Shown: positions 7,701 through 60,992 of the stretch, piece by piece | How positions within the stretch are numbered: position 1 is the stretch's first letter | Layout of the letters: each line of letters opens with the position of its first letter | DNA from: Basidiobolus meristosporus CBS 931.73 | Taxonomy: Eukaryota > Fungi > Basidiobolomycota | Assembly (NCBI GenBank): GCA_002104905.1 | Contig: MCFE01000004.1 | Coordinates: 124,001-188,000, forward strand | DNA: 64,000 nucleotides | Reading direction: 5' to 3' | Position numbers and translations under genes: made by a program | Notes under the pieces: model-generated | Database searches by the model: none | Told to the model about the DNA's origin: nothing | Seen by the model: the letters and a program-made list of their open reading frames with translations, nothing else

Positions 7701-9656
7701 TGAATCCAAGAAACTGAACTCAGCAGAGCAAGACTATCCAGTCCATGAGAAGGAGATGCTTGCTATAATACACTGTTTGAAGATATGGAGATGCTATATT
7801 GAAGGAGTCAAATGCACTGTGAAGACTGATCATGCCTTCCTCAAGTATATATTTACTCAGAAGGTACTCTCTAGAAGAATGACAAGATGGAGTGAATACA
7901 TTCAGCAATTTGACCTGGAGATTGTATACTGCCCTGGAAAAAACAACACGGTTGCTGATGCCTTATCAAGATTAGATCAAGTTGCACAACTCAACTTGGT
8001 GCATGAATCAGATTGGCCTAGCCTATTACCAAAGTACTTGGAGGACCAAGCCATTCCTAAAGAGGTGGATGAAGATATCAAGAAGATAATCCGTGATGAA
8101 GCCAGCAAATTTGTAGTACAGGATGAAACACTCTACCAAGTTGTTGATGGAAGCCCTATTGCCTATTGCCCTTATGTTTCTTGCCTGGATTTAATACATA
8201 AGCTACACAATGGATATGGACATCTTGGGATTGAAGGAACCTATAGCCTTGTGAAAGCCAGAGCATGGTGGCCCAGAATGAAACAGGATATTGAGAAGCT
8301 AGTGAAAACATGCCCAAACTGCCAAATTGATCAAGGCCAGCCACAAAGAATTGCCAAACTCTTCCCTTTGGAGCCTGTAAGACCATTTGAGAGATGGGGA
8401 ATTGACTTTATTGGAAGACTGCCAACTACCAGGAAATGCAACCGTGGATCCTAGTAGCAATTGACCATGCCACTAAATGGCCAGTTGCTAAAGCTGTACC
8501 AATAGCCAGTGAACAAGAAGTTGCAAGTTTCATTTACCATGAGATCCTTATGAAGTTTGGATGCCCTGTGGAGATCTTATCTGATAGAGGAGCAAACTTT
8601 ATGGCAAAGACATTAGAGGCTTACCTGGAAGTGCAGCAGATCAGACACTTGAAAACCTCGGCATATCACCCCAGAACTAATGGAGTCACTGGGTGGTTTA
8701 ATGGATTATTTGGAAAAATGCTCACAAAGTATGCAAATGGAGTTGTCAGTAGATGGGATGAGTATATAGACCAAGCACTCTTTGCATGCAGAGTCAGAGT
8801 ACACAACACCACCCAGCAATCACCATTTTACTTAGTGTATGAATGTGAACCAAGGATTCCAGGAGATCTCACACAACCAAAGCTTGCAGACACCTTAGAA
8901 GATGAACTCAGTCAGCCAAGTTGACACCAGCAAATGGAACAAAGATGTCAAGAGGCTCAGACCAAAGTATCTCAAAGTGCAGAAAAGATGAAGCAGAGAT
9001 TTGATAAGACTATAGCACCAGAAGCATTGACAGTTGGGAACTTTGTATTGCTAAGAAACAACACTCGGAAGAAGTTTGAGCCACAATGGACAGGGCCATT
9101 CAAGATCATCAGAGAATGTTCATTTGTAACTTACCAACTGGTGCACAAACAAGGCAATATCCGGGAAGACTTAGTGTATAGGGACAGACTCAAGCTTGCA
9201 AGACTTGCTGATAATATTGAACCATCAAGATATTGGTATCACAAAAAAAGAGATTCAGGAGAACCCTCTCAACTTTAGTAGGGGAGAATGTTATGATCTG
9301 CTGCTTGAATGTTTAAGTTAGATCAGTTTTTAGTCAAATCAATTAGTATATGTTTAGGTTATCAGTATATCAGTATTATCTATTAAATCAGTAGCATTAG
9401 TCAGCAAATGAATCAGCAGATCCTTATCAGACAGAAATAGATATATTAAGTAGGATCTTATTGGGTGATGATGATGCAATCAGATGAGTCATCAGCCACA
9501 ACCTACATTAGGAAATACAATTAGTCAGCAATTGATCTGGCAAAATGTATATGAGGAGCTGCTGGAGCCTCAATAAAAATCAGTTCAAGTTTTAGTGAAT
9601 ACAATACGAGCTAAACTCCCTATTCCTCTACAACTCTTATACCAAGACTTGTAACA
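4737..9656 (+). mobile_element. Full-length but decayed Ty3/gypsy retrotransposon Gypsy-1
   Basis: 368-bp LTRs at 4737-5104 and 9289-9656 (about 9 mismatches by eye), 4-bp TSD GATG, PBS TGGTAGCAGC and PPT AGTAGGGGAGAA. Gag, CCHC knuckle (CLNCHQQGHIAKYC), protease DSG, RT YLDD, RNase H DAS and integrase HHCC/DDE occur in gypsy order, with stops and frameshifts. Confidence 0.95.
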
Positions 9657-10944: not shown

Positions 10945-13900
10945 TGTTGAAATATTGGACTATTTGGTATCATTCAGCAGCTAAAAATTTACTTAACAAT
11001 TCTAGGCTAGTCTTAGTCACTGTAGGACTCATTTACTGCCTTAACTTTGCCACTTTCTCCAGATATATGATCTTATGATTATTCCCCTATAGTCAGGATC
11101 AAATTAGCACTATTACCAAACATTATGTACTAACCCTGAAACTGTTACAGAATGCTCCTGAATATTGAGAAACCCTCCCTACTTAGTGTTGCAGCTGTAT
11201 TACTTCTACAAAGGTATAAATACTGAGCTTCTTTATTAATAAACAACAGTTCAACTATTATCACTATTTCTTGATAAGTTCCTTATATCCAAATCACTTC
11301 TTAAATTGCAACAGGTTATGAGCCCCGATTGCCTTAATCTATTCTAAAGATGACTTCTACCAGCAAACAAAGCAATACCAACATCTTCCCTGTAAAGGAG
11401 AGGTTTGATGGGAAGAACTACAGACTTTGGAGAATCAAGATGCAGATCCACCTTGAGGAAAGAAAGCTTTGGAACATAGTAACAGGAAAGGAAGTTGAGC
11501 CCAAAGAAACAGCAGAAGATATGGAGAAGTTTCAAGAGAAGGAGAGAAAGGCCTTCAATGCAATATGCATCAATGTGCAAGACTCCTTCATTGGACAAAT
11601 CCATGCCTCAAATACTGCCAAAGCAGAATGGGAATCCTTAGAGATGATCTTTAGAGCAAAGTCAGTATCAAGCAAGCTTTATTTGAAACAAAAGTTCTTC
11701 AACATGAGAAAAAAGCCAGATGATGACATGCTACAACTCATTACCAGAATGGAGACACTTGCAGAAGAACTTTACAGTATTAATGCTGGTGTAGATGATG
11801 AAGAAAAGATACTCTGTCTGCTTTGCAGCCTACCAGACAAGTATCAGCCACTCATACTTTCTTTTGAAAGCAGAGAAGACAACTTGACTTTAGACTATGT
11901 CAAAGGAAGACTTCTCCATGAAGAACTCAGACGTAATGACCAAGCAGAGAAAATTGAAGATAATGCTTTATTCAGTTCAAAAAGGCATACAGAAAAGAAG
12001 GGAAAGCAACAAAACCGAAGAAAACCTGGCTGCTGTAACTACTGTAAGAAGCCAGGACACTGGGCAAGAGAATGCAAGAAGAAACAAGCAGACAAAAAAC
12101 AGAAACTAGAGCAGGCAAACCATATAACTACTGATGAACAGCTATTTGTCACTGTACAAGAGAGTGCAAGTAACCAAAGTAATGAATGGTATATTGACTC
12201 TGGAGCATCACAGCATATTTGTGGTATAAAGGATTGGTTCAGCAACTTAAAGACTATTCCCGTAAGAAAGGCTTATCTGGGAGATAACTCTGCATTGGAA
12301 GCTACCGCCAGTGGGTCTGTACAACTAAATATGAGTGATAACTCAGGGGCAACAACGGCAAAACTGACTGACATACTCTATGTACCTGGAATAGCTAAGA
12401 ACCTACTCTCAGTCAGTAAAGCAACTACTCAGGGACTGAAATTTGTTTTTACTAAGCTGAGCTGCTCAATATTGAGTGAGAATGGACAAAAATTAGCTTC
12501 GGGAATCAGAGATCACAATATATACAAGTTACAATGCAAGATCATTGTACCTGAGTATGTCAACATTGCTGAAACTGATGAAACCAACTGGGAGACGTGG
12601 CATAGGAGGCTAGGACACATAGGGGAACAGAAAATGAGCCAATTGGTGAGAAATCAGCTTGTTTTGGGCCTAAAATACTCAATTCGGATCAAATTGAATG
12701 TTTGTAAGGGATGTTCATATGGCAAACAAGCTAGGCAACGTTTCAAGAGCTCAGAAGGCATCAATACCACCAAAATATTGGCTATTGTACACTCAGACAT
12801 ATGTGGCCCCATGAGAACACTGTCCTTTGGAGCCAAGAGATACTTTATGACGTTTATTGATGACAAGACAAGATATACATGGGTGTACTTCCTCAAAACA
12901 AAGGATGAAGCTTTAGAGACGTTTAAGCACTTCAAGAACATGGCAGAAACACAAACTGGGTGTAAATTGAAGGTACTATGAAGTGACAATGGAGGAGAAT
13001 ACTGCTCAAAGGAGTTTGCAAAATACTGCTTGTCTACTGGTATACTTCAACAGACCACAGTTCCTCATACTCCACAGCAAAATGGAGAAGCAGAACGTGC
13101 AAATAGAACAATAGTAGAGATGGGAAGATCTATGCTACATGATAAGGGAATGGACTACAAGTTTTGGGCTGAATCTGTTGCTACCGCTGTATACATCAAG
13201 AACAGATGCCCAACAACAGCACTACGCGATTCTACACCCTTTGAAGCATATACAGGCAAAGAACCAGATCTCCAGCACCTCAGGATCTTTGGCAGTGATG
13301 TTTTTTATCACATCCCTGACAAAAAACGCTTAAAGTTGGAACCAAAGAGTAGAAAAGGGATCTTTCTTGGGTATTGTGAAGATACTTAAGGGTATAGAGT
13401 GTATGATGGCAAAATTCAGAAGCTGTTCAAGAGCAGGGACGTTGTATTTGAGGAGAATTCAGATCAGAAAGCCACAGAAATCATTGGCCAGCTGCCTGAT
13501 GATGCAATCAACACAAATGAAGAAGATACGTACCAAATCCAGCCAGAGATGGAAGATACTTCTACCAGTTCCAGATCAGAACAGTTTATCCCAGTTAGGA
13601 GATTTACCAGAATAAGAAATGCCCCTGGATCCTGGTGGCAGACATCCAATGATCATGAAGAAGCTTATCTTGCCTTATGTGCCAAACCTCAGAATCTGGA
13701 ACAGGCAATGCAAGGTCCAGATGCTACTAAGTGGCAGCAAGCCATGCAGGAGGAGTACCAATCACTGATCAAGGCAAAAACGTGGGAACTGGTAGATTTA
13801 CCAAATGGGAGAAAGCCAATAGGATGTAGATGGGTCTACAAGATCAAGATAACCTCAAATGGTGCCGTTGAAAAGTACAAGGCTAGATTGGTAGCTAAAG

Positions 13901-15609
13901 GCTATTCCCAGATCCAGGGACTAGACTTTAAGGAAACATTTGCTCCGGTTGCCAAGTTTAACTCTATTAGGACAGTTCTAGCCCTGGCAGCTGTACACAG
14001 TCAAGATCTACACCAAATGGACGTCAAAACAGCCTTTCTAAGTGGGGATTTGCAAGAAACTGTATATATGGAGCAACCAGAAGGATTTACCGATCCAAAA
14101 AGCCCCCATAAGGTGTGCAAACTTAGAAAATCGTTGTATGGGCTTAAGCAGGCACCCAGAGCATGGTATAACAAGATTGACACATATCTAGAGGAAATTG
14201 GGCTCATATGTAGCACTGCAGATCAGAGTATATATGTGAAACAGCTCAAGAAGGGAGTGATCAACCTAATAATAACTACAAGTGACTAGGAGCCACTTAA
14301 ACAGATGAAATCAGATCTCTTCAGCAAGTTTGAGATGAAAGATCTTGGAAAATTGAGCTATTTTCTTGGAATTGAGGTCAAATTTGACATACCTACGCAG
14401 AAAATTGTGCTGAATCAGTCTAAGTACATCAGGGACATTCTTAGACGCTTCAAAATGGAAAATTGCAAACCTGCAGCAACCCGTATGGACAATAGCCTGA
14501 AATTAAGCAAATCTCAGCCAGTTATAGATGAAAACGGCTCAAATATGGACCAAAACTTTCCCTATCAATCAATGGTCGGTAGCCTAATGTACTTGATGGT
14601 GTCTACACGTCCAGACATTGCAGTAGCAGTTGGAATAGTCAGTCAATTCATGCAGAATTATGGATCCAATCAAATTGCAGCAGTTAAGCGGATTTTCAGA
14701 TATCTACAAGGTACCATAAATATGGTACTGGAATACTCTGGAGCAGCAAATAGGCAAAAATTTGATGGTTATAGTGATTCAGATTGGGGTAGGGATCTGA
14801 TTGACAGATGCTTTACCACAGGCTATGTATTTCTTTATGCTGGTGCAGCTATTACTTGGAATTGCAAGAAACAACCAAATGTGGCACTATCTACAACTGA
14901 AGCCAAATATATGGCTGCATGTCAAGCAACTAAGGAGGCTATATGGCTACAAAAATTATTCAAAGACTTAGGTTTTAATTCAGGTGAACCAACATGTATT
15001 TACAAGGATAATCAAAGTTGTATTTCATTAGCTAGGAATCCTACTAATCATGCCAGAACTAAGCACATTGATATACAGCATCACTTTGTGAGGGAAGCTG
15101 TAGAAAATAACTTAGTAGAGCTGGTTTACTGCCCAACTGACAAAATGGTGGCAGACATATTGACAAAACCACTAGCTAGGCCACAGTTGGAGATCCTTAG
15201 AGAGAAATTGGGATTAAGAAATTATTTAGTTGAGGGGGAGTGTCGAAATATTGGACTATTTGGTATCATTCAGCAGCTAAAAATTTACTTAACAATTCTA
15301 GGCTAGTCTTAGTCACTGTAGGACTCATTTACTGCCTTAACTTTGCCACTTTCTCCAGATATATGTTCTTATGATTATTCCCCTATAGTCAGGATCAAAT
15401 TAGCACTATTACCAAACATTATGTACTAACCCTGAAACTGTTACAGAATACTCCTGAATATTGAGAAACCCTCCCTACTTAGTGTTGCAGCTGTATTACT
15501 TCTACAAAGGTATAAATACTGAGCTTCTTTATTAATAAACAACAGTTCAACTATTATCACTATTTCTTGATAAGTTCCTTATATCCAAATCACTTCTTAA
15601 ATTGAAACA
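10945..15609 (+). mobile_element. Ty1/copia element Copia-2 (young, near-intact gag-pol but RT-dead)
   Basis: 369-bp LTRs at 10945-11313 and 15241-15609 with 4 mismatches. PBS GGTTATGAGCCC is the copia-type internal tRNA-iMet fragment primer. PPT is AGTTGAGGGGGAG. Gag-pol 11350-~15240 has three in-frame stops (12979, 13387, 14287) and a 21-bp deletion removing the YVDD motif. Confidence 0.95.
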
Positions 15610-40869: not shown

Positions 40870-43050
40870 GTATCCACACCATGCTTCAGATGGAGTAGTG
40901 TCACAAAGTATTCTGTAATAACTCTTATTTTGAAGTTATATAGCTGTGTTAACTGATTCTACCCAAAAATCACAGGATAATTTCTGATCATAGATCAAAG
41001 TTCTTGTCATATCAATTATTGTGCTGTTTGCATGTTCTGCTGATCCATTTTGCTGTGGGGAGTATGGCACAGTAGTCTCTTGCTTTATCCCATGAATTTT
41101 GCAGAAGTGGATGAAGAGCTTGAGGTATACTCTCCACCATTGTCAGAGCATATTTTCATGATTTTTCACCATTTTCTCTCTCCACCATGACTTTGAACTC
41201 CCTGAGCTTAGACAGAGCTTCTTCCTTTCTCTCCATGAAGTAAACCCGCGTGAATTCTGTATAATCATCAATAAAAGTGATTAAATACTTCATCCCACCT
41301 AAGGACAAATTTTGCATAGGTCCACACAGATCTGAGTGAATTAGATCTAATTTTTTCTTAGTTTTGATTAACCCAGAGCTCTTGAACAGTTGTCTGGCTT
41401 GTTTCCCATATATGCAGGCCTCACAGTGGTCCAAATTAGCTGGGGGATCAATCTTTACTCTGGAAATCAGCTGATCTTTGATCATTTTGCACAAATAATC
41501 AAAATTTATGTGTCCAAATCTCCTGTGCCAAAGCATTGCTGTTTCTTCATTTTACCTGCTTATAGTGGCTTCCAAATAAGATTGAATATAAGTCAACTTG
41601 TATAGATTCTGATCACTGATACCCAAAGCAATATGGGCACCATTTTGATCAGTCATCTTGCATCCAGAATTGCCAAAGCTGAAACTGAGTCCTTCTGCAG
41701 TGGCCTTGCTTACAGATAGTAGGTTCTTGGCTATTTCTGGTACATGGAGTACTTCTTTAAAGGTCAGTGTATGGCTTCCTTCACTGCTTCTAAGGTTTAC
41801 TAGGATAGTTCCTTCTCCCACTGCATCAGGTGTCCTATAGTCACCCATGAAAACCTTCTTAATTGGAATTTCTTGAAATTGGGTAAAAGTTCTTTTAGGT
41901 GTGCAAAGTGTTGAGATGCTCCAGAGTCAATATGCCACATCTAAGAATCCTTGTTTTTGGTCATATTTAGTGCAGATATGAATAGTCTATCTTCAGCTGT
42001 TGCAGCATTTCCATGTTCTGGCTTCTTTTGATGATTATCTCTCTTTTTGAGACACTGGTCTGTTGTGTGTCCTTTCCTTTTATATTGGTTGCAAAACAGG
42101 TTTCTGTTGCCTTTGTAGGGTCTTGGGTACCTCCTTTGCTGGTTATCATTACTTATTAAAGCATTTTCTTCTTCCATCTTATTGGCGCTTGATTTTTTTG
42201 ATTCCTCATCCAGGCACCTTCCATATAAGTAATTTAAGGTCAAATCTTTAGTTCTGGACTCTAGGGCTGATACAAGGCTCTGAAACTTGTCTGCCAGGCT
42301 ATTCAGGATGGTAACTATTATATCCTCATCAGTAGGTGGTACACCCACAGATTCCATCTCATCTTCCAGCAGGGTAATTCTGTTAATTAGGTTTTTCATT
42401 TCTTCTCCTGGCAGCATCTTTAGAGTGAAGAATTTTTGTCTCAGATACATTTTCTTAGCAGCTGAACATGACTGGTAGGTGTTGTCTAATGCCTTCCAGG
42501 CATTCTTTGCCATTTTTGCTCTTGAGCATTGAATTAGCAATTTGTCCTAAACATTGAGGCCAATGCAGTTATAGGCACTTTGTTCTTTCTTCTGGTACTT
42601 TAAGGCTTCCTCTCCCACATTTTTAGGAGGGCATTCTTCTCCCATGACAATATCCCAAAGGCCTCTCTCTTGTAGCAGCATCTTCATCTTCACCTTCCAC
42701 ACTTGGTAGTTAGATCTATCCAACTTTTCAGCAGAGGGAAAAATTCCAGTAATAGCAGTAGTAGACATTGCAGAGAGTGACAGCTTGGGGTTCATAGCCT
42801 GTTGTAAGAGTCTTGAAGATATTGGAAGTGATTGGGAGAACAAGTAGATTATGTGGTTTTCACTTAATGATTTATTGAATGTAAAAGTAGTATTTATACT
42901 TTTACATGGTCTTGGCATAATAAGCGCATATAATAGGTTAAGGAAGGTCCCAAGAGCATGTGTGCAAAGTTTGGGGCTGTTTGGACAACTTATCCAATTT
43001 TCATGATCTGGGTAAATATTCTAAGTAAATTCCAACAAGGAATTTGGTCA
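40870..43050 (-). mobile_element. Second Ty1/copia family (Copia-F), 3'-truncated after the integrase core
   Basis: Gag from ATG 42768 (..KLDRSNYQVWKVKMKMLLQERGLWDIV), knuckle remnant, protease WHIDSGAS, GAG-pre-integrase LWHRRFGH and integrase HSDLCGP. PBS GGCTATGAACCCC adjoins the LTR edge at 42800. Confidence 0.85.
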
Positions 43051-46920: not shown

Positions 46921-48022
46921 TTTTACGTTTTAAGATGGATATCATGGAATTTTATCTATTTACACTTTACATCTCGAATACCAATAGGTTATCAATTTTG
47001 AAAAAAAAAATGAACGTTTTGAACCGTGATTGTGTACTACACACTCTCTCCACATGATTGACACTTGACAGTGTAACAGAACCTGTAGGATGTTCCTTGC
47101 CTACTCCAATGTTATCTGTGTAGATTGGACTGCCAATACTGATAACACAATCAAAGTTTCGGAAATTTCTCGGCCTATGGATAGGATGCGTGTAGTGGTG
47201 GGTGTTTAGATATCTGGAAACAGACCAGTCGATCGAGGGTGATCCATACACTCTGACTCACAACTCTATCTACGGTGTAAACTTCCAATGACAGATTAGC
47301 CAAATTCTGGCATGCGGTCATAGATCGGCTTATCGTTTACCAGACAGCTACGGATACTCTGATATCTTATCATCGTGTCTCGCTTGCACTTGACTTTGAC
47401 AGGAACCGTGCCTAGAATTTGATACCTTCCCCGCTAAACATAGAGTGTACACACTGAATACTGCAGGTGGATACTCGCCTCGATGACCGGAATACTGCGG
47501 TATGTTAGGAATTACGGCCATTGGATTGAAGGAAATTAATATCAACTATAACCATATACAAATTCTTTATCATTCTATGGGTGTCGACTTTAATTGAGCC
47601 TAATCCTTTATTCTAAGTAACATCAATCTTTCCTATTTTGGAGATAAACGATGAATTTTTCCACGGTCAGATAACAATATTGCAAGGTTGAGAGAGAAAG
47701 AGCTCTGATTGGTGAAGCCAAGATCAGGTTTCAAGGGAGGGGATTAAGATTCCAACTTTGCTCAATTCCTGGTTCAAGATTACGACGGGACAATTATGCT
47801 GTCAGTCAAACCCCAAGTCTTATTGGCTGCATGATCATGTGAGGTTCCTGTTTATGGTCTCTGGTGAAAGGAAGCCGGCCAAATCCATAATGGAAACATA
47901 CCGGAGTTCCGGTCACTTTTTGTTGACTAATTAAGGCCAGGCTTCGTTTATAAAAACTGCCTTTGCCAGCAGTAGAATAGCAAACCATCAGCGTCACCAG
48001 CATTCCCTACTAGCCTTACAAG

Positions 48023-48208
48023 ATGAGAATCAACGAAGTGTCCAGCATCGAAACCATTACTTTCCTTCGCCTCACTCCCGAAGAATGCGACCAGGCCACT
48101 ACAGGATTGGAGACCGAGGACCAAGCCCCGCTTGCCGAACCAGTATTCAATGGCTTCAAGTTCATGCGGTTGACCCCTGAGCCCATCGAAGGAGCCCCCA
48201 AATGTTAG
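48023..48208 (+). CDS. Double-F[LM]RLTP micropeptide 1 (61 aa)
   Basis: MRINEVSSIETIT-FLRLTPEE...NGFK-FMRLTPEPIEGAPKC. TATAAAAA at 47949. Confidence 0.85.
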   Translation: MRINEVSSIETITFLRLTPEECDQATTGLETEDQAPLAEPVFNGFKFMRLTPEPIEGAPKC

Positions 48209-48489
48209 CTTGGCCATTTTAAAGCACAGAGTGTGTTTGGGACGGCTCCGCTAACATTCCTCCTTTTGTACTATAATAATCATTTTCGTTGAAAATGAAC
48301 ACTGCAGTCAGGAGCAAACTTATGTAATTGGGATTCCCATACGTGAGGCTATAAATAATTCAACCAATTTTTGTGAATAAACCAAATCTATACCATAATT
48401 ATTATACAGTTCGTTAGGCTCCCGTTAATTCAAGAGCTCATAAAATATATTTATACGATGGATATTCGAGTACACGGTTGGCATGGCAA

Positions 48490-48702
48490 CTACATATCAA
48501 CGGAGGAGCGTCGCGGTGTAAAGTCTGAGATATTGCTATGATCAAACTCTGGGGTCAAGCGAAGGAATACCAGCTTGGTAAGTACACCATCGTTTATTTT
48601 CTCGGTGGTTTCGGGCAACATTGGGACGTAGGTATCATTTGGTTCCTCTGCAACCAGGCGAAGGAAGGTAGTCGGTTGATTCTTATGAATTAGCTCTTGC
48701 AT
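48490..48702 (-). CDS. Double-motif micropeptide 2 (70 aa)
   Basis: MQELIHKNQPTT-FLRLVAEE...-FLRLTPEF...RRSSVDM. TATAAAA at 48762-48756. Confidence 0.85.
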   Translation of the reverse strand: MQELIHKNQPTTFLRLVAEEPNDTYVPMLPETTEKINDGVLTKLVFLRLTPEFDHSNISDFTPRRSSVDM

Positions 48703-49504
48703 CTTGTCTTATGTAGCTGATATGGATTGATGGTTGGGGATGAGCACCAGCAAGGTTTTATACAGCTGTGCTATGCACCGGTCAAGATAAGAACCCGAGT
48801 GGATAGAGTACTGTTGACTTGGAAAGACTCAAAACCAGAATGCTTATCTGTAGGGGGAGTTCGTCCAAAGCTCAAGACTCACACCCCGTAATACCAGTAG
48901 CTATTTGGTGGGTTCGGCGTGGATATGACTCGACCTGCAACGCCACGAGTGGTGGATGCAATGAATCAGTCATGAATCCAGTATATGGAAAGGGCCGATT
49001 ATCTTCAATCTCAAATTTAAAGCGAGAAGTCGCATTAGGGTTCATCAGCAATAGAGACTGATCCCAGTGGTGGTTGAAACGCTCAAAATCATCCCATCTT
49101 TCACATCCGTCCACATTACCAAGCATCATTACCACTCGGGAGGGAGGTTTTAGAATCACCAGATAACTAGTTTTTCTCATTATGAGATGGGTCATGTACA
49201 AATAGGAAATTCCAGTATTTTCAGGATGAGATATCAGAAAAAAGGGTCTAGTAGCACATCTGGATTTCCCAGTAAACCATAAACGTAAAGTGAGATTCAC
49301 TTCAGTAAATTAGGCTAATTCGTTTTCAGTTCAAGATAATATTTTTCACCCCAGTTGGGAATAGTATCTTTTTTCCGGTTTTTCATCGGTATGTAAAATA
49401 TCGTAGATCAATCAGGTTACGATGTTCACAAAGTTTCTTACAGATTTATTGAAGTTTACAAGCAATGGACCTTCGGCATAGAAAAATGATGCGTTTCAAG
49501 TTAT

Positions 49505-49726
49505 TTACATTTCAATCGAGGATCTTCGGGAGGTCTTCTGTGATTCGGTTGTCATATCAAACTCGGGGGTTAACCTCATGAAGACCTTATCTTCGTGTTG
49601 CTTGGTCTCTGCGAAGCTCTTGGAGTCAATCAGCTCTAGCAGTACAGGAAGCTCTACAGGGACTGGTTCTTCAGGACTTAACCGGAGGAAAGCCATAGGT
49701 TGGTTGTTGTGGATCAAGCTTTGCAT
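49505..49726 (-). CDS. Double-motif micropeptide 3 (73 aa)
   Basis: MQSLIHNNQPMA-FLRLSPEE...-FMRLTPEF...RRSSIEM. TTTAAATA at 49798-49791. Confidence 0.85.
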   Translation of the reverse strand: MQSLIHNNQPMAFLRLSPEEPVPVELPVLLELIDSKSFAETKQHEDKVFMRLTPEFDMTTESQKTSRRSSIEM

Positions 49727-50024
49727 GCTGGGCGGTAGAAGTCTGGACGGAGAGGTAGACTGGATGAATCTCCAGGGTAGCTGGGAGGAGTATTTAAAGA
49801 CTTTGCGATCATCTACGTTTCATTTATAATACAACTTGCATGATGCTGGTTTAGATTAAAAAATAACATGAAGAATACTGGGAAATCAATGGCGCGATTG
49901 ATGAAGCATACAGCCACAGATCATGGAGGAAGCAATTTTGAAACGAATCACATCAGCTTCCCATGATGATTAGCATTCAATGTAAGCATCATTCGTTCGT
50001 GGGAACTGGTAAACTCAGCACTTT

Positions 50025-50381
50025 CCTCTAGAGGCATCTTGCTGTTCCGTTAGAAACATATTTCCTCTAGGGGAAAACCGGCAGATCTAACACGCACCTT
50101 CCTCTAGAGGATGACGGTTTCGTAGCTTTGATGATTAATGTCCCTCAAAGTGTGGAATGGCACCCAACAACCCGCATTAATTTAGTGGAATTATAATTAG
50201 TAATTTCATTGATTGTAACCAGGGCTGTCAAGCCTAATTACACGCGAAGTCACTATATCATTCCCCATAAATAGCCATCAATACCTGTTCCCGAGACCAA
50301 CACGGATTTAACTCTGAGATCACAGCAGCGTGAGAACACCACCTGCCTGTATCAGACTGAAACTTCGATTTCCTCTAGAGG
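50025..50381. promoter_or_regulatory. Four copies of palindromic CCTCTAG(A/G)GG in the divergent promoter of micropeptides 3 and 4
   Basis: Copies at 50025-50034, 50064-50073 (within TTTCC-N6-GGAAA), 50101-50110 and 50372-50381, each preceded by TT. Confidence 0.6.
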
Positions 50382-50588
50382 CAACCAGAGTTGTGGATTC
50401 TTTGTATTTCCACCTTGCTGAAACAGAGTTCCTAATTCGTCCGTGTCAATTGAAGCAACGAAGAAAGAGAGTCGCCCATTTCGTACACTCCGATGTCAAA
50501 TAAAGCTAAGCCTTCTCCTCGCCCATTTTGAAGGTATAAATCCCCCGAGCTCCTGCCTAACTATCAACCATCAAGTCCAGCCAACGTC

Positions 50589-50756
50589 ATGCAATACCTG
50601 CTAAGCTCGGAGACTGTCGGGGTTTTCACCTTCCTTAGACTCACCCCCAATGAGGTTCCATCTGTGCCCAGCATACCGAACACCTTTTCGACGCCGTTGG
50701 ACACCCCTGATGGCTTGACCTTTATGCGATTAACACCTATGGAGACTGAGGATTGA
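50589..50756 (+). CDS. Double-motif micropeptide 4 (55 aa; below the ORF-track length cut-off)
   Basis: Hand translation: MQYLLSSETVGVFT-FLRLTPNEVPSVPSIPNTFSTPLDTPDGLT-FMRLTPMETED*. TATAAAT at 50535. Confidence 0.85.
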   Translation: MQYLLSSETVGVFTFLRLTPNEVPSVPSIPNTFSTPLDTPDGLTFMRLTPMETED

Positions 50757-51214
50757 GATCTTGGCATCACTTTGCATGTAAATAATCATTGTCATCACAA
50801 AGCCTCCTGAATATCGAGTTGAAGAATAAAGTGACGTTTGCCATTTTCCTGAATGCACTTGCTTCTAATATGCACTGAGGTGTATAGAACTGTTCCAAGC
50901 GTTCTATGAGCTACTCTACACCAAGGTATCAAGAGATTACTTCACGTGAAAAAGGGTTTGCCAAGGCTCACCTATCCCTAACTCGTATCTCAAACAATTA
51001 AGATAAGCCTGCATCCGGCTACATAACTATGCAAGATCCTAAATGAATATTGCTATTATCTACCCTTCTTGCTTGAATCCTTTGAAACAGCTTACTCGGA
51101 GACAAGATATAGTTGCATCGGAGTGGAGTAAGTAACGGAATAGAGAGTGTTCTCAAGTATTTATAGATCGACCTCTCTACAACCCTACTAACACAACAAT
51201 TTGCTTTCGTTACC

Positions 51215-51406
51215 ATGCACATCCAACCGAACAACGAACAGCCTTTGACCTTCCTTCGTCTTACTCCTGAGGAATCTTCCGAGTCTTTGGTTTCCGTTGC
51301 CCCCACCCAGGACCATGATGTCAATCTGGAGCCGGTCAGTAATCATGGCTTCTTGCGTTTAACCCCGGAGCATGAGACACTTACGGACAACCACTCCAGC
51401 GCCTGA
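51215..51406 (+). CDS. Double-motif micropeptide 5 (63 aa)
   Basis: MHIQPNNEQPLT-FLRLTPEE...NHG-FLRLTPEH.... TATTTATA at 51158. Confidence 0.85.
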   Translation: MHIQPNNEQPLTFLRLTPEESSESLVSVAPTQDHDVNLEPVSNHGFLRLTPEHETLTDNHSSA

Positions 51407-51609
51407 GTGGACCGTTTTAGCAACACAATCAGTCAGATTATATGTATGTATTGAGGTAAAGATTCAAGATAATCCGTGAATAAATAGGATAATTTGTTTA
51501 TTGTGTAATGGATCAAGTCAGATATGTATAGACTCATTGTTGCGATATGAGTGTGCTTTGAGGAAATGAATGTATTGTACAAGATGAGCGAGTGAAGGCG
51601 AAAAAGCAA

Positions 51610-51798
51610 CTACATCTCGCCCAGTGAGCATCCAAGGCTGACTTGTCCTGCGGACTCGATAGGCTCAGGGGTTAACCGCATGAAGGTGAATCCGTTGTAG
51701 ATGGGCTCAGAAAGAGGCACTTGGACTAAGGCATCAGATCCGAAGGAGACCTGGTCACAATCTTCAGGAGTAAGACGAAGGAAGGTCATGGTTTGCAT
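51610..51798 (-). CDS. Double-motif micropeptide 6 (62 aa; likely start 51798 rather than 51909)
   Basis: MQTMT-FLRLTPEDCDQ...NGFT-FMRLTPEPIESAGQVSLGCSLGEM. TATAAAA at 51871-51865 lies inside the longer ORF-track call, which favours the downstream ATG. Confidence 0.85.
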   Translation of the reverse strand: MQTMTFLRLTPEDCDQVSFGSDALVQVPLSEPIYNGFTFMRLTPEPIESAGQVSLGCSLGEM

Positions 51799-52174
51799 TT
51801 TCGGTAGGCTAGCGGCTGGGTAGAGCTTCGGGGGTGATGATTCCTCAAACCAGGGAAAACGGCGTTTTATAGATGGCCAGCAAAGCTGTAATTGGCATAT
51901 GATGGTCATCGGAATTCCAATGAGTTACTATATCAAGTGGGGAAGATAAAGTAGGCTATGTCACTTTGCTCCACATGATCTTTGCTGACTAACATGGCAT
52001 GTCAAGGAACAACGGTTCTGAGCATCGCCGCAATTGAATTCCAATCCCAATTTGGATCTGTCAGGAATATGACCAATTCTGTATATCATACATACCTAAT
52101 TAGTCTGGTTGAGTAGTGTTCCGTGTAACCGAATGCTCATCAATCTCTGTGATAAGCCCCAATGCCATGTATAG

Positions 52175-52381
52175 ATGACAGTTCATTATGACCCAACCCT
52201 CGACCCAACCCTCACTCTACCTAGTATCAGCATTATGACCCAACCTTCACTTCGCCTAGTATCAGGATCGCACGGAAAAACTCAAGCTCGTCACGCACCG
52301 ATCGGCTTTGCACGATTATCTACCATCCATGGCCCTTTTACCCTGAGGCCCGGCTATTTCGGAGCTGGTAGCTTACACTAG
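52175..52381 (+). CDS. Possible degenerate eighth member of the micropeptide family
   Basis: Contains QPSLRLVS (cf. QPTTFLRLVA) and GFARLS (cf. GFLRLT), spaced 20 aa apart. Directly abuts the TATA box of micropeptide 7. Confidence 0.3.
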   Translation: MTVHYDPTLDPTLTLPSISIMTQPSLRLVSGSHGKTQARHAPIGFARLSTIHGPFTLRPGYFGAGSLH

Positions 52382-52430
52382 TATTTAAACAAGGTCCATG
52401 GAGTGAAGAAAAGGCACCGATCATCACAAC

Positions 52431-52637
52431 ATGCAAAATCTCATTCAAAACGACCAAGCTTTCCAATTCTTGCGTCTCACTCCGGACGAAGCCCCTGTTG
52501 AAGTCACATCAGCACGGGAGAACATCATCGCAGCCTGGGAATCGCCGCTGTACTCGGAGGGAGCCTTCTTGCGATTGACACCAGAGCACGAAGATGTCTC
52601 GGACTATTCATCTTGGCGAAGCTCAATCGAAATGTAG
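52431..52637 (+). CDS. Double-motif micropeptide 7 (68 aa)
   Basis: MQNLIQNDQAFQ-FLRLTPDE...EGA-FLRLTPEH...WRSSIEM. TATTTAAA at 52382. Confidence 0.85.
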   Translation: MQNLIQNDQAFQFLRLTPDEAPVEVTSARENIIAAWESPLYSEGAFLRLTPEHEDVSDYSSWRSSIEM

Positions 52638-52773
52638 TTTACCAACCAGGGACCATGCATGTTATATCAAGCAATAAATTTTTGTATTCTATTCCTTAAA
52701 CCTTATACACGCAATGCAGTTAGGATTAGTTAGTTAGCAGATCGTTATTGATCAAATACCTGGGCATTCAAAT

Positions 52774-53460: not shown

Positions 53461-56400
53461 ATGGCCTCAGATGCTCTGCAACAAATTCAGATTGACTCTG
53501 AAATACCGCCTGATATGACTATACAGTCATATCTGCGTCAGGTGATAGCTCAAAGAAATGCACTCAGGGTCCAGAACGGCCAGTTGTGGAAGATCGTTGA
53601 AAAGCAGCGTCTTATAATTCATCAACTAAAAGTCCTTTCCGCGAAAAACAGCGAACTATTGAAGAACCAACTACCAGAGAAATCTCTTTCAAAAGATTCG
53701 GTGGACGAGACTTTATGTCAGACTGATGCCGCGATTACTTCTTTGAGAAAGGAATACGACATCAAGGCAAGTCAAGCTGACTTCAGTTCCTTAGATTCCC
53801 CAACTTCTATGGAAGCCTCAATACTCACCCTACCGAAGGGTCCGGAAGATGATAACGGTGGGGATTTCAATGATGACAGCCTGAGGAATATTGAAGCAGC
53901 CGAGCTTGAGGTCGCGACCCTCAATCCTGGCAAGAAAAGACCAATAATACCACAGGCAACTGACGTTACCTCTGGAGTAGTTCCTCCAATTTCTGGTACA
54001 GATGTTGAGCACGCACCCGAATCCGCTTTGACAACTACTCAAATTACCGAAAGTGAAATAAACAACGAAGGCCCAATTGTCATTGATAAACAACCAAACG
54101 CTCCAGATAACGAGGAAACAGAGGGGGTAAATTTGAAGATATATATTTATGTTTGATGTACAAGGTATTCATATTACACTTCTCCATTAGACCTCTTCTG
54201 AAGCCAACATCTTGAGCTCGGAGACAGGCCTCGTATCAAACGACTCGGAGGCGGAACCACCATTTTCAAATCAGAAATCTTCGGAAGTAGAATTAGCCCA
54301 GATGAATGAACTAAACACATCCGAGAGTAGCCTTCCTTCTACTTCAGACCAGGGGCTTTCTGGAGCGGAGAGTGAAAGCCTGGATATAGGACAGGATTTT
54401 GACAAAGATGAGGAATACAGGGCACACGATGGATCCAATTTTACCAAGGTTGAAAAGCCTACCGAAGATTACTCTACTCCTGACCCATCAACTGACTCTG
54501 TTACTACGAAAATGGCGAACGACCCTACTCGAGAAGCCTCTGCACCCAACACCCGAAAGAACTCTGAGCCCTTGGTCGATCTAACTGGATTAAGGTCTTT
54601 AATTGGAGTAGACGTCAAAGTGAATGGCTCTACCGTAAAGGTCAACTCAAAGGGAAAGGAGGTACTCGTGTTTTTAATATCCATTTTGAAGAAGGAGTCG
54701 CAGGAAGAAGCGGAATTGTGGACGATCGAAAAGTTGTATTCCGATTTTTTGGCTTTGGATGCCAAGGTAAATTTGGCTGTAGCGATACAAGCTTATTGAA
54801 CGGGGTCTTAACTGTTTACCATGTGTAGCTTAAAGCAACTCAACCTCGAAATATCGTAAATCAAATCGGAAAGCTCCCTGATAAGAATCTTTTCGCTACT
54901 CATGCACCATCCAAGGTTGACCAAAGAAAGCTGGCACTTCAACAGTACCTTCAGCACCTGCTTGTCCTGAATATGGTGGATACACGAGATGTATGTGAAT
55001 TTTTCTCCACCAATCTCACCCAGCGCTCCAGGAGCCAAGAAAAGGCCTATGGCATTAAGGAAGGCTATCTGACAAAGAAGGGAAAGAACTTTGGCGGATG
55101 GAAACGTAGATATTACTCATTGAAGAGCCCTATCCTAAATTACTGTGAAAATAAGGATGGGAGCATTCTAGGGTCGATCAGAGTTTCAAACTGTCAGATC
55201 TCTAAACAGTCCGCTAGTATTGATCTGGGCGATGACTCTTATCGCCACGCTTTTATGATAGTCGAACCAAAAAAAAGCGGAATAGGGGTGCATCGCCATA
55301 TATTCTGCGCTGATAGTGATGCAGAGCGAGATGAGTGGGTAGCTGCTTTGTTGGTGTACACTGCACCTGGAAAGCATCCATCCGCATCGCCCTCCTTAAC
55401 CGCGTCCTCAACTCAAGATTCTTACGGAGAAGGTGGGAATAAAGCGAAGGAGAAGCTCAAAAAATTCATAAGGGCCGATTCTGTCAAACAACCGCAAACA
55501 TCAGCGCCATCAAAACAAACAGCACACACTTCTCAGTCTGCCCCTGCACCCATTCAAAAATCGGTATCGATTGTTGGGACAGATGTAAGTCGAAATACCA
55601 GTGAAATAGTGAAGGCACACCGAAAAAGCGCTTCTCTAAAGGATCCACCGACAAGCTCTTTAAACATGCCCTCGTCCACAAAAGAGAGCTGCGCGACAGA
55701 TCAGCAACACGTCACCTCTACCTCTAAAGCTGGAGGATTGCCACAATCAGCTTTCCTCAAAAAACCCTTTGCTGGAAATCTGAAAAGTAATGCCCAGGTC
55801 AAGATGCAAAAGGAGAAGGAGCCCAAGAAGGGAGGTAGAATGACTTTCCATTGGGGAAAGAAAATCTTCTCTAGTAGTAGCGGCAGTAGTGGTAAGTGAT
55901 ATGGAATTTATGTGCGGTAGAAGGACGAAATGATCTGAAAAAGGATTTGCGTGTAATAGAAGGCAAGAGCAAGGCGCCATACGTCCCCGTTTTCGGGGTC
56001 CCATTGGAAAAAGCAGTTGAAGTATCTCGAGTCAAGGATGGTTATGAGTTGCCCGCAGTCGTATACCGTTGCATTGAGTATTTAGACGCAAAATTAGGTA
56101 TATGAAGCATACAACCACTCCATGGATTCGAGTTTTAACGTGATTACTCCAGCTCATAAGGAAGAAGGGATATATCGCTTATCCGGAAGCTCTGCTGCTA
56201 TCAAGGTGCTGCGAGAAAAATTCGATCAAGGTATCTCCTGAGATTGCTTATTAAATCTGCTCAAGAACTGATAGCTTTACTAGATATGGATGTGAACCTG
56301 CTTGGCTCTGGTGTATATTATGATGTGCATGCAATTGCTGGGTTATTGAAACTGTATCTGCGTGAGTTGCCAACCAGTGTGCTAACACACGAGATGCATC

Positions 56401-57435
56401 AAGATTTCTTACATGTGATCGGTATGTAGATACGCCTGCTTAGAATATCCATCACATATTCTTAACCCTGCGTTATAGATCTGCTCAACCGCAAAGAGCG
56501 AGTCAACGAGCTTGGTCGACTGGTATCCACCTTACCCTTGGCCAACTATACACTTCTACGCTGCCTGATTGCCCACTTGATTCGGATTGTACAGCACGCA
56601 GACGTCAACAAAATGACAGTTCGAAACGTTGGGATAGTTTTTTCTCCAACGTTGGGCATCCCGGCCGGGGTGTTCAACCTCTTGATGACTGAGTTTGAGT
56701 ATATTTTTTCGGTAAATGACCAAGGCTTCGCTGCACCCAGAACCATCGATGACAGCGATCAAGAGGACAATCTCGAAGAGCCCTCCACAATCCCCCAAGA
56801 AGCCCAAGCACAGGAAGACACGCTGGTAAACGATGCGGTCGTGGATTCCTCGAATAGCTTTGATCAGCCGGCCGAGCCCAACCGGCACGAAGACGAGGCC
56901 CAAAGCTTTGATGAATCGCAGTTTGCAGCCTCGATATCCAAATTCAAAAACCCCCAGTTTCGATCCATCTTACGTGACAGAGCTGGAAGAAACAATCGCA
57001 ACAGTATCATATATGCTGGTGCGGCACCAGAAAGCATGGTCAAGATGGAAGTTGGTTTACATGGTATGTACTCAATCTAATAATCACCATGTCACACGCA
57101 TCTAATCTAGCCGATGTGTAGTACGACCAACCAGTGGCGAATATGAAGAGGATGTTTATGATTTAGTCTATCCTTCTGGCGGTTCAAGCGGGGATAATGA
57201 GATGGAATTTCCATTAGACTCCATGGAGGATGAGGGTGAGGGTGAGGGTGAGGGTGAGGGAGAAGAGACTTCAAATGAGAAAGCGAAGCACGGTGAGAAT
57301 GAGTGCGAAGACCCAGATCAAGCTGTAGAGGAAGCCGAGGATGGTCAAAGCAAGTCGAGTATACCGGAAGTTACCACTGACAACGAAGCAAACAACACAT
57401 CCAACGGTACGAATAAGCCACCCGACACAGTTTAA
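53461..57435 (+). CDS. BEM3: PX-PH-RhoGAP protein, Bem3-like (multi-exon)
   Basis: N-terminal coiled coil (RNALRVQNGQLWKIVEKQR), PX domain (LFATHAPSKVDQRKLALQQYL), PH domain (KEGYLTKKGKNFGGWKRRYY) and RhoGAP domain (VFGVPLE..PAVVYRCIEYL; IYRLSGS; NKMTVRNVGIVFSPTL). In-frame GT-AG joins, e.g. 54126/54191 and 54766/54829. Confidence 0.88.
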
Positions 57436-59127: not shown

Positions 59128-60992
59128 ATGATTACCGAGTCCAAGCTCACGCTGAACACGCTGAACCCCAACAAGCGGAGGGTGATGTCGATCAGACTCT
59201 CCGAAGAATTGTTGGAGCTCCTGAGCCAAGGCAAAGAGAAATCCATCAAGATCCAGTTCGGCACAGATCAGGTAGATTCCAGTCTTTGGGTCGTTTTTGT
59301 TGCTTTTCGTTAACGGCTGGCCCTCCTGGTAAAGAAAATTCGGGTGGGAAACGCCTCCTTCGACTACAACAAAGTAGATGAAACGCAACCGGTGGAAATT
59401 TACCAGAAGAATCCATCCTCAGAAAACCTAGAGGTGATCGGTTACCTGACTCATAAACTGACCGTGAGGAGAGAAATGGGGGACAAAACAAAAGAAAGAG
59501 CGGCCAGCCGGATGGACTCGAGAAAGTAAGTGATTGGTCGTTGAGCGATCCCTGCTGCTCCTACTAACCTAATCTCCTTAGGAGCGTACTCCTCAACAAA
59601 GACAACAAAGAAGGTATCGATCAACGTTAACCCTTGTGGTGTCAAATGGTATTTTATATTCACTGTCATTTTGCAAAGTTGAACCGCAGAAAATGCGAAG
59701 ACCACCCCAGCTGAAGAGCGCCCCCATCACCACTAGACGCCTAGCCCCCACATCCACAACCCAATCATTGGCTTCCTTGGTCACTTCGAAAGATGGTGGA
59801 AAGCCCGGTAGCAGTATCCCGTTACGTACGCGAATTCTGCAGCTACTCGCCATCAATCCAATGAGTCAGGGGAATTTGGCTATGACCATGAAAGTCCCCA
59901 AGGATGAGTTGATCAAGACATTGAATTCAGTGAGTCCCCTTTGCAAATTAACTGGATGATCATCACTCCGGCTGACTGTAATTGCGCTTAGGTCGCGACG
60001 GTGACAGGGGATATTTGGTCCTTGAAAGATGACTCATTCAAGGAAGTCAAAATCAAAGATTGGGAAGCTTATTCATCTAAAGAGAAGGAAACGGTCTCGT
60101 TAAATGCATTAAAGGCATTCGACAGCCTCAATTTACCATCGGACGCACCTGAGAGAAGCGGCCTGATACTGCCACCCAAGCCAGAATCAGAGCCTACACC
60201 CGACCGTGATAAGCCCAAGGGAGCGGCAGAAATGAATGAAGAAATCCAGCAAAAGGACTATTCCCGCAGAAGAATCGCCGAGACGCCCAAAGAGGCACCA
60301 TCCGATGCGCGTAGCACGACAAGAGGCACATCTTCCAAACCCAGCAGCCTGGCTAGGTCGAGCTCCAACGTGAAGGAAACCTCGGCCGAGAACACACCTA
60401 CACCGACGACACGAAAACCTCGAGCACCCAGAGACCCCTCTTCTCTTGGGGGATATAGAATTCCCAAGAAGACTGACTCGCGAAACGCTGAATCTGGAGA
60501 GATATCGGAAAAAGAGCCGCTGCCTGCCAGCAAGAACAGAAGCAATGGATCTGCAGTAGAGACCAATAATTCACATGCGGCCAGCACTGGGACAGCTCGA
60601 TCTGACCACGGTATGATCCAATTTGTTCACTCACCCACTCACCAATACGGTATTTACCTGTTGATGCAGCCAGTCGAAAGCATCCGGTGCGCGTGTACGT
60701 GGTCAAGACCTCCATTGAGTATCACGACCTAGTGGCGCTGTTCCAAGTCAAGAACATGGAATACCAGAGCTTGAACGAGAAGATCCACGCCAAAAAACCC
60801 CAACTCGAGCGCTTGGCCGAGCAGGCGCGTAAGAGTGTCGACTCGGAGAAGCAGGAGCTTGCGGCCGACATCATGAAGCTCCGCTGCAAAGAGATCTCCC
60901 GTTGGGCGGATGAGTTTACTGAGCTACACTACGACCTAGAGGCTATCTCGAAAGAACTATCCAGAGCTAGTGAGCAAGGCCTTGCTGACTAG
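59128..60992 (+). CDS. ELL: ELL-family RNA polymerase II elongation factor (multi-exon)
   Basis: N-terminal domain (..SIKIQFG..EIYQ..VIGYLTHKLTV), winged-helix segment (LRTRILQLLAINPM...WSLKDDSFKEVKIKDWEAYS) and C-terminal occludin/ELL-like helical domain (EYHDLVALFQVKNMEYQSL). GT-AG introns. Confidence 0.72.

Follow-up and report, generated by a model that had tools for sequence, protein, structure and literature searches.

We describe here a cluster of seven small genes, Bm1 to Bm7, that lies at positions 48023-52637 of a 64,000-nucleotide window (the whole stretch of DNA that was analysed) on contig MCFE01000004.1 of the fungus Basidiobolus meristosporus CBS 931.73. All seven open reading frames (ORFs) are real protein-coding genes, and each encodes a protein in which one short motif occurs twice. 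Together with six members from Basidiobolus ranarum (P0002 to P0005, the Br genes, and P0015 and P0016) they constitute a family of 13 that is undescribed, confined to Basidiobolus as far as our searches reach, and of a familiar general kind, that of small disordered motif-bearing proteins. We favour, with moderate confidence, the reading that these are abundant, disordered proteins that present a short linear motif bivalently and act most probably as competitive regulators or adaptors with optional control by phosphorylation. An earlier note, made from the letters of the window, had drawn attention to the cluster; its initial observation is confirmed, and its interpretation is partly supported.

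The list of ORFs in the 47-54 kb region reproduces the coordinates, the strands and the lengths (55-73 amino acids, aa) of the seven ORFs that had been claimed, all of them within 48023-52637 and in the strand order +,-,-,+,+,-,+:

48023-48208, plus strand: Bm1, 61 aa, with FLRLTP and FMRLTP; the sole member annotated in public protein databases
48490-48702, minus strand: Bm2, 70 aa, with FLRLVA and FLRLTP; C-terminus RRSSVDM; orthologue B. ranarum P0003
49505-49726, minus strand: Bm3, 73 aa, with FLRLSP and FMRLTP; C-terminus RRSSIEM; orthologue B. ranarum P0002
50589-50756, plus strand: Bm4, 55 aa, with FLRLTP and FMRLTP; orthologue B. ranarum P0004
51215-51406, plus strand: Bm5, 63 aa, with FLRLTP twice; orthologue B. 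ranarum P0005
51610-51798, minus strand: Bm6, 62 aa from an internal Met of a 99-aa ORF, with FLRLTP and FMRLTP; nearest paralogue Bm1
52431-52637, plus strand: Bm7, 68 aa, with FLRLTP twice; C-terminus WRSSIEM

The Bm6 reading frame is open for the full 99 aa, up to 51909, and an RNA 5' end at 51802 favours the internal Met and the 62-aa product; the upstream 37 codons are absent from the transcript, because the contig that covers Bm6 in sequencing run X3 (described below) ends in adapter at 51802.

Each ORF carries exactly two motifs of the form F[LM]RL[TSV][PA], which gives twelve copies of F[LM]RLTP and single copies of FLRLVA and FLRLSP, and the earlier count of 14 hexapeptides, 12 of them with TP, is confirmed by two scans. 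A degenerate DNA pattern for FxRLTP has 12 matches in the 64 kb, all within 48062-52582, where 0.09 are expected from dinucleotide-preserving shuffles, and a relaxed six-frame scan of the window adds the FLRLVA and FLRLSP copies and no additional family member. The synonymous variety of the motif codons that had been described stands in most respects, with the full set of six Arg codons and four of those for Leu (CTC, TTG, TTA and CTT) used in the 12 TP motifs, but the Leu codon CTG that had also been listed is not among them. The two motifs start 33 residues apart in five of the seven ORFs (30 and 36 residues in the remaining two) and in eight of the 13 members when B. ranarum is included, with a range of 30-37, and the stretch between them is 24-31 residues long. 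The logo compiled from all 26 copies in the 13 members reads hydrophobic(-2)-T(-1)-F-[LMI]-R-L-[T21,V3,S2]-P24-[E/D]22-[E/D]16. The F/Y, R and L positions are unvaried in 26 of 26 copies, whereas Val takes the place of Thr in three (the first of Bm2 and both of P0016) and Ser does so in two, and the first motifs of Bm2 and Br2 have Ala or Glu where the others have Pro. Because F/Y, R and L never vary while Thr and Pro are sometimes replaced, the FxRL core is the essential part of the motif, and because Thr is Val in three copies, Thr-Pro phosphorylation cannot be required universally.

Comparison with B. ranarum is among several independent lines of evidence that the ORFs are genes. Protein searches with a profile of the seven members lead to small annotated B. 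ranarum proteins, and four orthologues share a single 3.7-kb contig (L001), where their order and relative orientation match those of Bm2-Bm5; two dispersed paralogues, P0015 and P0016, are at separate loci. The orthologue pairs share 53-70% amino acid identity, with nonsynonymous divergence (dN) of 0.19-0.36, synonymous divergence (dS) that is above 2 or incomputable (saturated or undefined), and a dN/dS ratio (omega) of ~0.16-0.19 where it can be computed; for Bm2 and P0003 the values are dN 0.35 and dS 2.2. Over the 310 aligned codons of the four pairs, differences at codon positions one, two and three number 85, 66 and 185, respectively. Start and stop positions are preserved between the species, and the linkers between the motifs retain 30-55% identity while dS is saturated. 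The coding-sequence alignments score 13-33 z units above shuffles, whereas three of the four 3' flanks are unalignable (z ~0) and the Bm4/Br4 3' flank is weak (z 3.4), and some similarity is kept in three of the four promoters. There is purifying selection in the sense frame for the four orthologue pairs and for the Bm1/Bm6 paralogue pair, and the proposal of selection at the protein level, made originally from codon usage in the motifs, is upheld both by the low omega and by the excess of third-position changes. Antisense ORFs of the GVRRRK type overlie several of the genes and were rejected, as the changes between the species concentrate at third positions in the sense frame. We also note an apparently decayed and unannotated B. 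ranarum member 750 bp upstream of P0016 (L004:890-1036), with two FLRLTP motifs 43 codons apart and stop codons in between.

The genes have the signals expected of individual transcription units. A TATA-like box lies 49-74 nucleotides (nt) upstream of the ATG in all seven, TATAAA is present in nine of the 13 family promoters relative to a background of 0.13, and AATAAA is found 35-167 nt past the stop codon in six of the seven. Public run X3, which derives from the genome's own study, amounts to 27 Mb in contigs, and its only label is 'DNA?'. Its coverage consists of gene-sized patches with nothing between them and with no joints, adapter sequence is found at three contig ends, and the contigs of Bm1, Bm4 and Bm6 end on the sense side 13-14 nt downstream of AATAAA. 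Because of this patchy gene-sized coverage, the adapter-marked ends and the ends that follow AATAAA, we take X3 to be transcriptome data in which the ORFs are represented by short, unspliced mRNAs of the sense strand. Short unspliced X3 contigs cover five of the seven ORFs, in agreement with the earlier description of the genes as intronless and answering its suggestion that expression be checked. The signals and contigs are as follows:

47949-47954, plus strand: TATA box of Bm1
48757-48762, 49793-49798, 50535-50540, 51158-51163, 51866-51871 and 52382-52387: TATA-like boxes of the other six genes
48376-48381, plus strand: AATAAA poly(A) signal of Bm1
49445-49450, 50825-50830, 51479-51484, 51497-51502 and 52673-52678: further AATAAA signals
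47998-48394: X3 contig over Bm1, depth 1250, the highest in the cluster
49467-49639: X3 contig over Bm3
50323-50844: X3 contig over Bm4, ending 14 nt past AATAAA
51483-51802: X3 contig over Bm6, depth 296, with adapter at the 51802 end
52506-52652: X3 contigs over Bm7, including a second variant

Several details of these transcripts and promoters deserve mention. The Bm4 contig begins 266 nt before the ATG (50323-50588), upstream of the TATA box, which suggests either a second upstream start or an overlapping transcript. Bm7 is represented by two versions in X3, the minor of which (depth ~39 of 103) has the linker substitutions W36R and E43K (window positions 52536 and 52557) and may be allelic, if the genome is heterozygous or polyploid, or may come from a near-identical second copy at another locus. 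A second run, X4, guessed to be RNA and from a related organism, contains a Bm3 contig with seven differences, five of them synonymous and two conservative changes in the linker. In the promoters, the block CCACTCGGRTTCTTATCTT, which includes a GATA-type CTTATC core, is conserved before Bm2 and Br2 (window ~48780-48805), and the block ACTCCGAYGTCAAATWAAGCTAA is conserved before Bm4 and Br4 (window ~50490-50515); their conservation stands out because they are kept even though neutral sites are saturated, and both are possible transcription-factor sites. The element AACCATCA is located between the TATA box and the ATG in five of the 13 promoters (Bm1, Bm2, Bm4, Br4 and P0016; background 0.03) and may be an initiator-type element.

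The encoded proteins are acidic. The seven window members have isoelectric points of 4.05-5.03 (4.05-6.56 across the 13), and all 13 are rich in Pro, Ser and Thr and low in Gly, with grand average of hydropathy (GRAVY) values of -0.7 to +0.09. Inspection of composition and sequence, with no dedicated signal-peptide predictor, revealed no hydrophobic segment, signal-peptide-like N-terminus or CaaX box in any of the 13 members, and no KR or RR dibasic site beside the motifs, as the earlier note had also reported. One subfamily, Bm2, Bm3 and Bm7 with their orthologues, has a conserved N-terminus (MQxLIHKNQP) and C-terminus ([RW]RSS[IV][ED]M). The latter is present as RRSS[IV][ED]M (WRSSIEM in Bm7) in five of the 13 members, and the RRSS tails, judged by sequence, fit the textbook protein kinase A (PKA) consensus, RRxS followed by a hydrophobic residue. 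An AlphaFold2 model of Bm3, the one member modelled, built with the 13-member alignment, has no secondary structure and a predicted template modelling score of 0.16, consistent with the disorder that had been proposed, and its per-residue confidence (pLDDT) is highest on the ten-residue blocks that hold the two motifs. Such a predicted profile is typical of disordered proteins that bear binding motifs.

Relatives were sought widely. Profile searches of collections of 5.8 billion and 1.8 billion proteins return relatives in Basidiobolus only, and searches of Pfam and NCBIfam with all 13 members at E <= 10 give no match other than an irrelevant phage family (E 0.14, two of the 13 members). The best feature score in the ESM Atlas is 0.41 and provides no lead, a sequence profile search of the PDB yields chance matches only (for example the immunoglobulin lambda strand YLSLTPEQW), and a full-text literature search for FLRLTP and its variants found no relevant paper. 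The family was originally put forward as unrecognised, and no relative outside Basidiobolus emerged from any of these sources. Stray matches to sequences that are not from Basidiobolus were discounted, because, in databases as large as these, chance alone should produce many matches to a single motif of 8-9 residues, and tandem repeats multiply its score: P0006 is a perfect threefold tandem repeat on an unrelated contig, P0007 is on a high-GC bacterial contig, P0014 has repeated ATFLRVTADEV units that by eye are bacterial helix-turn-helix-like segments, and P0017-P0019 are low-complexity repeats. An ENA metagenome contig (L002:10001-10210) contains a perfect threefold 48-bp tandem repeat that encodes GFLRLTPDETESAKSS and was judged a chance look-alike; the repeat adjoins an ORF in which visual inspection suggests a fragment of a transposase. 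A scan of metagenome DNA for the two-motif pattern with 33-codon spacing gave three matches, all non-coding or repeat artefacts, in collections that, among those scannable as DNA, hold no fungal genomes. Absence of the family from other fungi may reflect annotation practice, because only one of the seven genes (Bm1) is in the protein collection.

The anatomy of the proteins suggests how they might work. The seven intronless genes, each transcribed independently, would encode acidic, intrinsically disordered proteins of the cytosol or nucleus, in which nothing would be under strong constraint except two ten-residue motifs, hydrophobic-T-F-[LMI]-R-L-[T>V,S]-P-[ED]-[ED], about 33 residues apart. 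To dock, each motif would form a short extended segment that makes contact by its invariant F, R and L, and the presence of two would make the protein a bivalent ligand of a partner that is dimeric or has two binding sites. The proteins could then serve as competitive inhibitors, adaptors or decoys of that partner, with optional phospho-regulation at Thr-Pro and, in one subfamily, at the PKA-like RRxS tail. Binding, bivalency and regulation are proposed properties. The first of the two ideas in the earlier note, that of disordered bivalent peptides with short linear motifs, fits the gene, disorder and family evidence, while its kinase component is weakened by the replacement of Thr with Val in three of the 26 copies, including both of one paralogue.

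Several considerations weigh against this proposal. The bivalent-ligand role is deduced from anatomy, and the RNA nature of X3 from the pattern of its coverage, with the run itself labelled 'DNA?'. Bm2 and Bm5 have no X3 contig, yet this proves nothing either way. Spacing of the motifs is not strictly fixed (30-37 residues) and differs by 1-3 residues between orthologues, and the linkers are also constrained, so that there may be more to the protein than its two motifs. Finally, the absence of relatives outside Basidiobolus is weak evidence, since ORFs as small as these are seldom annotated.

One set of alternatives, which we regard as unlikely, makes phosphorylation the central event: the proteins would be phospho-switch regulators of the ENSA/Igo or inhibitor-1/DARPP-32 type, or phosphodegron decoys of the SCF-Cdc4 type, with activity hinging on phosphorylation of Thr-Pro by CDK, MAPK or DYRK and of the RRSS tail by PKA. 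Thr-Pro is present in 21 of the 26 copies, preceded by Arg at -2 and followed by acidic residues, the RRSS[IV][ED]M tail fits the PKA consensus in the members that have it, and the proteins are small, acidic and predicted to be disordered. They are also similar to the wider group of small disordered regulators with short linear motifs (ENSA/ARPP-19/Igo, inhibitor-1/DARPP-32 and Sml1/Hug1/Dif1) in size (55-120 aa), in predicted disorder, in forming paralogue families, and in having conservation focused on one or two short motifs with candidate phosphorylation sites. However, the replacement of Thr by Val in three copies (both motifs of P0016 among them) and by Ser in two rules out phosphorylation as a family-wide requirement, and a kinase site alone leaves the invariant F, R and L unexplained. 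The Pfam families and signature motifs of those regulators are absent from the Basidiobolus members; the Endosulfine signature (FDSGDY) is in none of the 13 sequences, and neither Pfam Endosulfine nor another inhibitor family is matched even at E <= 10. The Basidiobolus family also differs from them in duplicating one motif at a near-constant distance and in being found in a single genus in our searches. The Cdc4/Fbw7 phosphodegron has hydrophobic residues ahead of pT-P and an acidic or phosphorylated residue at +4. L-T-P-E-E fits it loosely, and 14 of the 26 copies have one of D, E, S and T at +4, but with Arg at -2 and with Val for Thr in three copies.

A second alternative is that the proteins are ligands of Atg8, with F-x-x-L as the core of an LC3-interacting region (LIR) or Atg8-interacting motif (AIM) that docks as a beta-strand on Atg8, two to each protein; we consider this quite unlikely. 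The sequence F/Y-[LMI]-R-L matches the weakly specific pattern [WFY]xx[LIV] in all 26 copies, the Phe often has Thr or Ser before it, acidic residues are found past the core, and the context is predicted to be disordered, so that the family shares with LIR/AIM ligands an aromatic-x-x-aliphatic core in disordered acidic surroundings, a likeness known from sequence. Nonetheless, [WFY]xx[LIV] is very common by chance, and the Basidiobolus core has an invariant Arg at its second variable position followed by L-[T/V]-P; to our knowledge, the consensus of published LIR sets includes neither an invariant Arg in the core nor T-P after it. Among other docking motifs, which serve here as no more than leads, those of 14-3-3, B56 (LxxIxE), calcineurin (PxIxIT and LxVP), cyclin (RxL), Cks1 and PP1 (RVxF) appear not to fit every invariant position, and neither do PP4 FxxP, SUMO-interacting motifs, nuclear export signals, the clathrin box, COP1 VP or type 2 peroxisomal targeting signals.

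We think it very unlikely that the proteins are precursors of peptide signals or of ribosomally synthesized and post-translationally modified peptides (RiPPs), in which a prolyl-specific peptidase would cut after the motif Pro, or another protease after the invariant Arg, and a peptide of ~33 residues would be released or cyclised; in a variant of this model the conserved motif units are themselves the mature products. The attraction is that two conserved Pro-terminated motifs bracket a more variable stretch of near-constant length and that a signal peptide is absent, as it is from MSDIN precursors. The latter, which give the cycloamanides of Agaricales (amatoxin and phallotoxin RiPPs), are likewise small, intronless-looking, clustered multi-copy genes, with Pro-terminated sequences around the variable part (..TRLP in MSDIN, ..RLTP in Basidiobolus). 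But the differences are substantial. The bracketed stretch of 24-31 aa greatly exceeds the known cores made by prolyl oligopeptidase (POP), such as the 6-10-aa hypervariable core of MSDIN, and the 30-55% identity that it retains between species, with dS saturated, is not that of a hypervariable segment. One motif is present twice in place of a distinct leader and follower, the N-termini are MQxLI.. and not MSDIN, and Pfam and NCBIfam profiles match no leader or follower of the MSDIN type. The host phylum is different, the motif Pro is lost to Ala or Glu in the first motifs of Bm2 and Br2, and there is no POP gene in the window. Indeed, no gene for a peptidase, macrocyclase, methyltransferase, cytochrome P450, transporter or UstYa-like protein was found within the 64 kb, as the earlier note had observed of maturation enzymes. 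Precursors of the Kex2-processed repeat or alpha-factor type are similar in having a short conserved unit repeated with variable spacers and in forming paralogue arrays, but the Basidiobolus proteins have hydrophilic N-termini, and with neither a signal peptide nor dibasic processing sites beside the units, a route through the secretory pathway is unsupported.

A similarly slim chance attaches to the idea that these are bulk protective disordered proteins, akin to hydrophilin-like stress proteins, that have no specific partner and in which the motif is a relic of internal duplication. Their acidity and predicted disorder are compatible with this, as are the contig depths of 1250 for Bm1 and 296 for Bm6 relative to 11 in the upstream region of a neighbouring gene, although depth is a poor measure of expression. 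A relic, however, would not hold F, R and L in all 26 copies with synonymous sites saturated, and the GRAVY values and low Gly content are unlike those of hydrophilins. That a conserved element works at the level of DNA or RNA, with the ORFs incidental, has nothing beyond the repetition itself in its favour and is scarcely credible, as six Arg and several Leu codons encode identical residues, differences mass at third codon positions, and the ORF starts and stops are preserved between species.

The cluster lies where repeat-rich DNA gives way to ordinary genes. Most of the leftmost 47 kb of the window is made up of remains of copia- and gypsy-type retrotransposons, including gypsy-type reverse transcriptase, RNase H and integrase in broken ORFs (5163-8924), a copia-type gag-integrase-reverse transcriptase spread over three ORFs (11350-15306) and a further copia gag (41941-42918). 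To the right, a gene of several exons encodes PH and RhoGAP domains and an ORF shows weak similarity to the occludin/ELL domain (53461-57080 and 60001-60992, respectively), and the nature of these neighbours suggests no link with the micro-proteins.

The cluster is of moderate interest, and the evidence is not yet that of a new system. Small proteins of under 100 aa are routinely missed, and here the public protein sets include just one of the seven genes even though five have transcript contigs, some of them deep, and four have orthologues that have been conserved since a species split so old that synonymous sites are saturated. Basidiobolus lives in association with the gut of amphibians and reptiles, occasionally causes disease in humans and is known for unusual secondary metabolism. 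Were processing of the proteins to prove true, this would be a fungal peptide natural-product locus of a new kind, and were the RiPP model to hold, it would represent a RiPP-like pathway, and a new class of ribosomal peptide or peptide signal, in an early-diverging fungus. In the reading that we favour, that of disordered bivalent ligands, a duplicated motif with invariant F, R and L on a floppy chain has, to judge from its sequence, the signature of a ligand for a specific, and probably conserved, cellular machine. Identification of the partner would establish the motif as a new short linear motif and might bring to light lineage-specific regulation in Basidiobolus.

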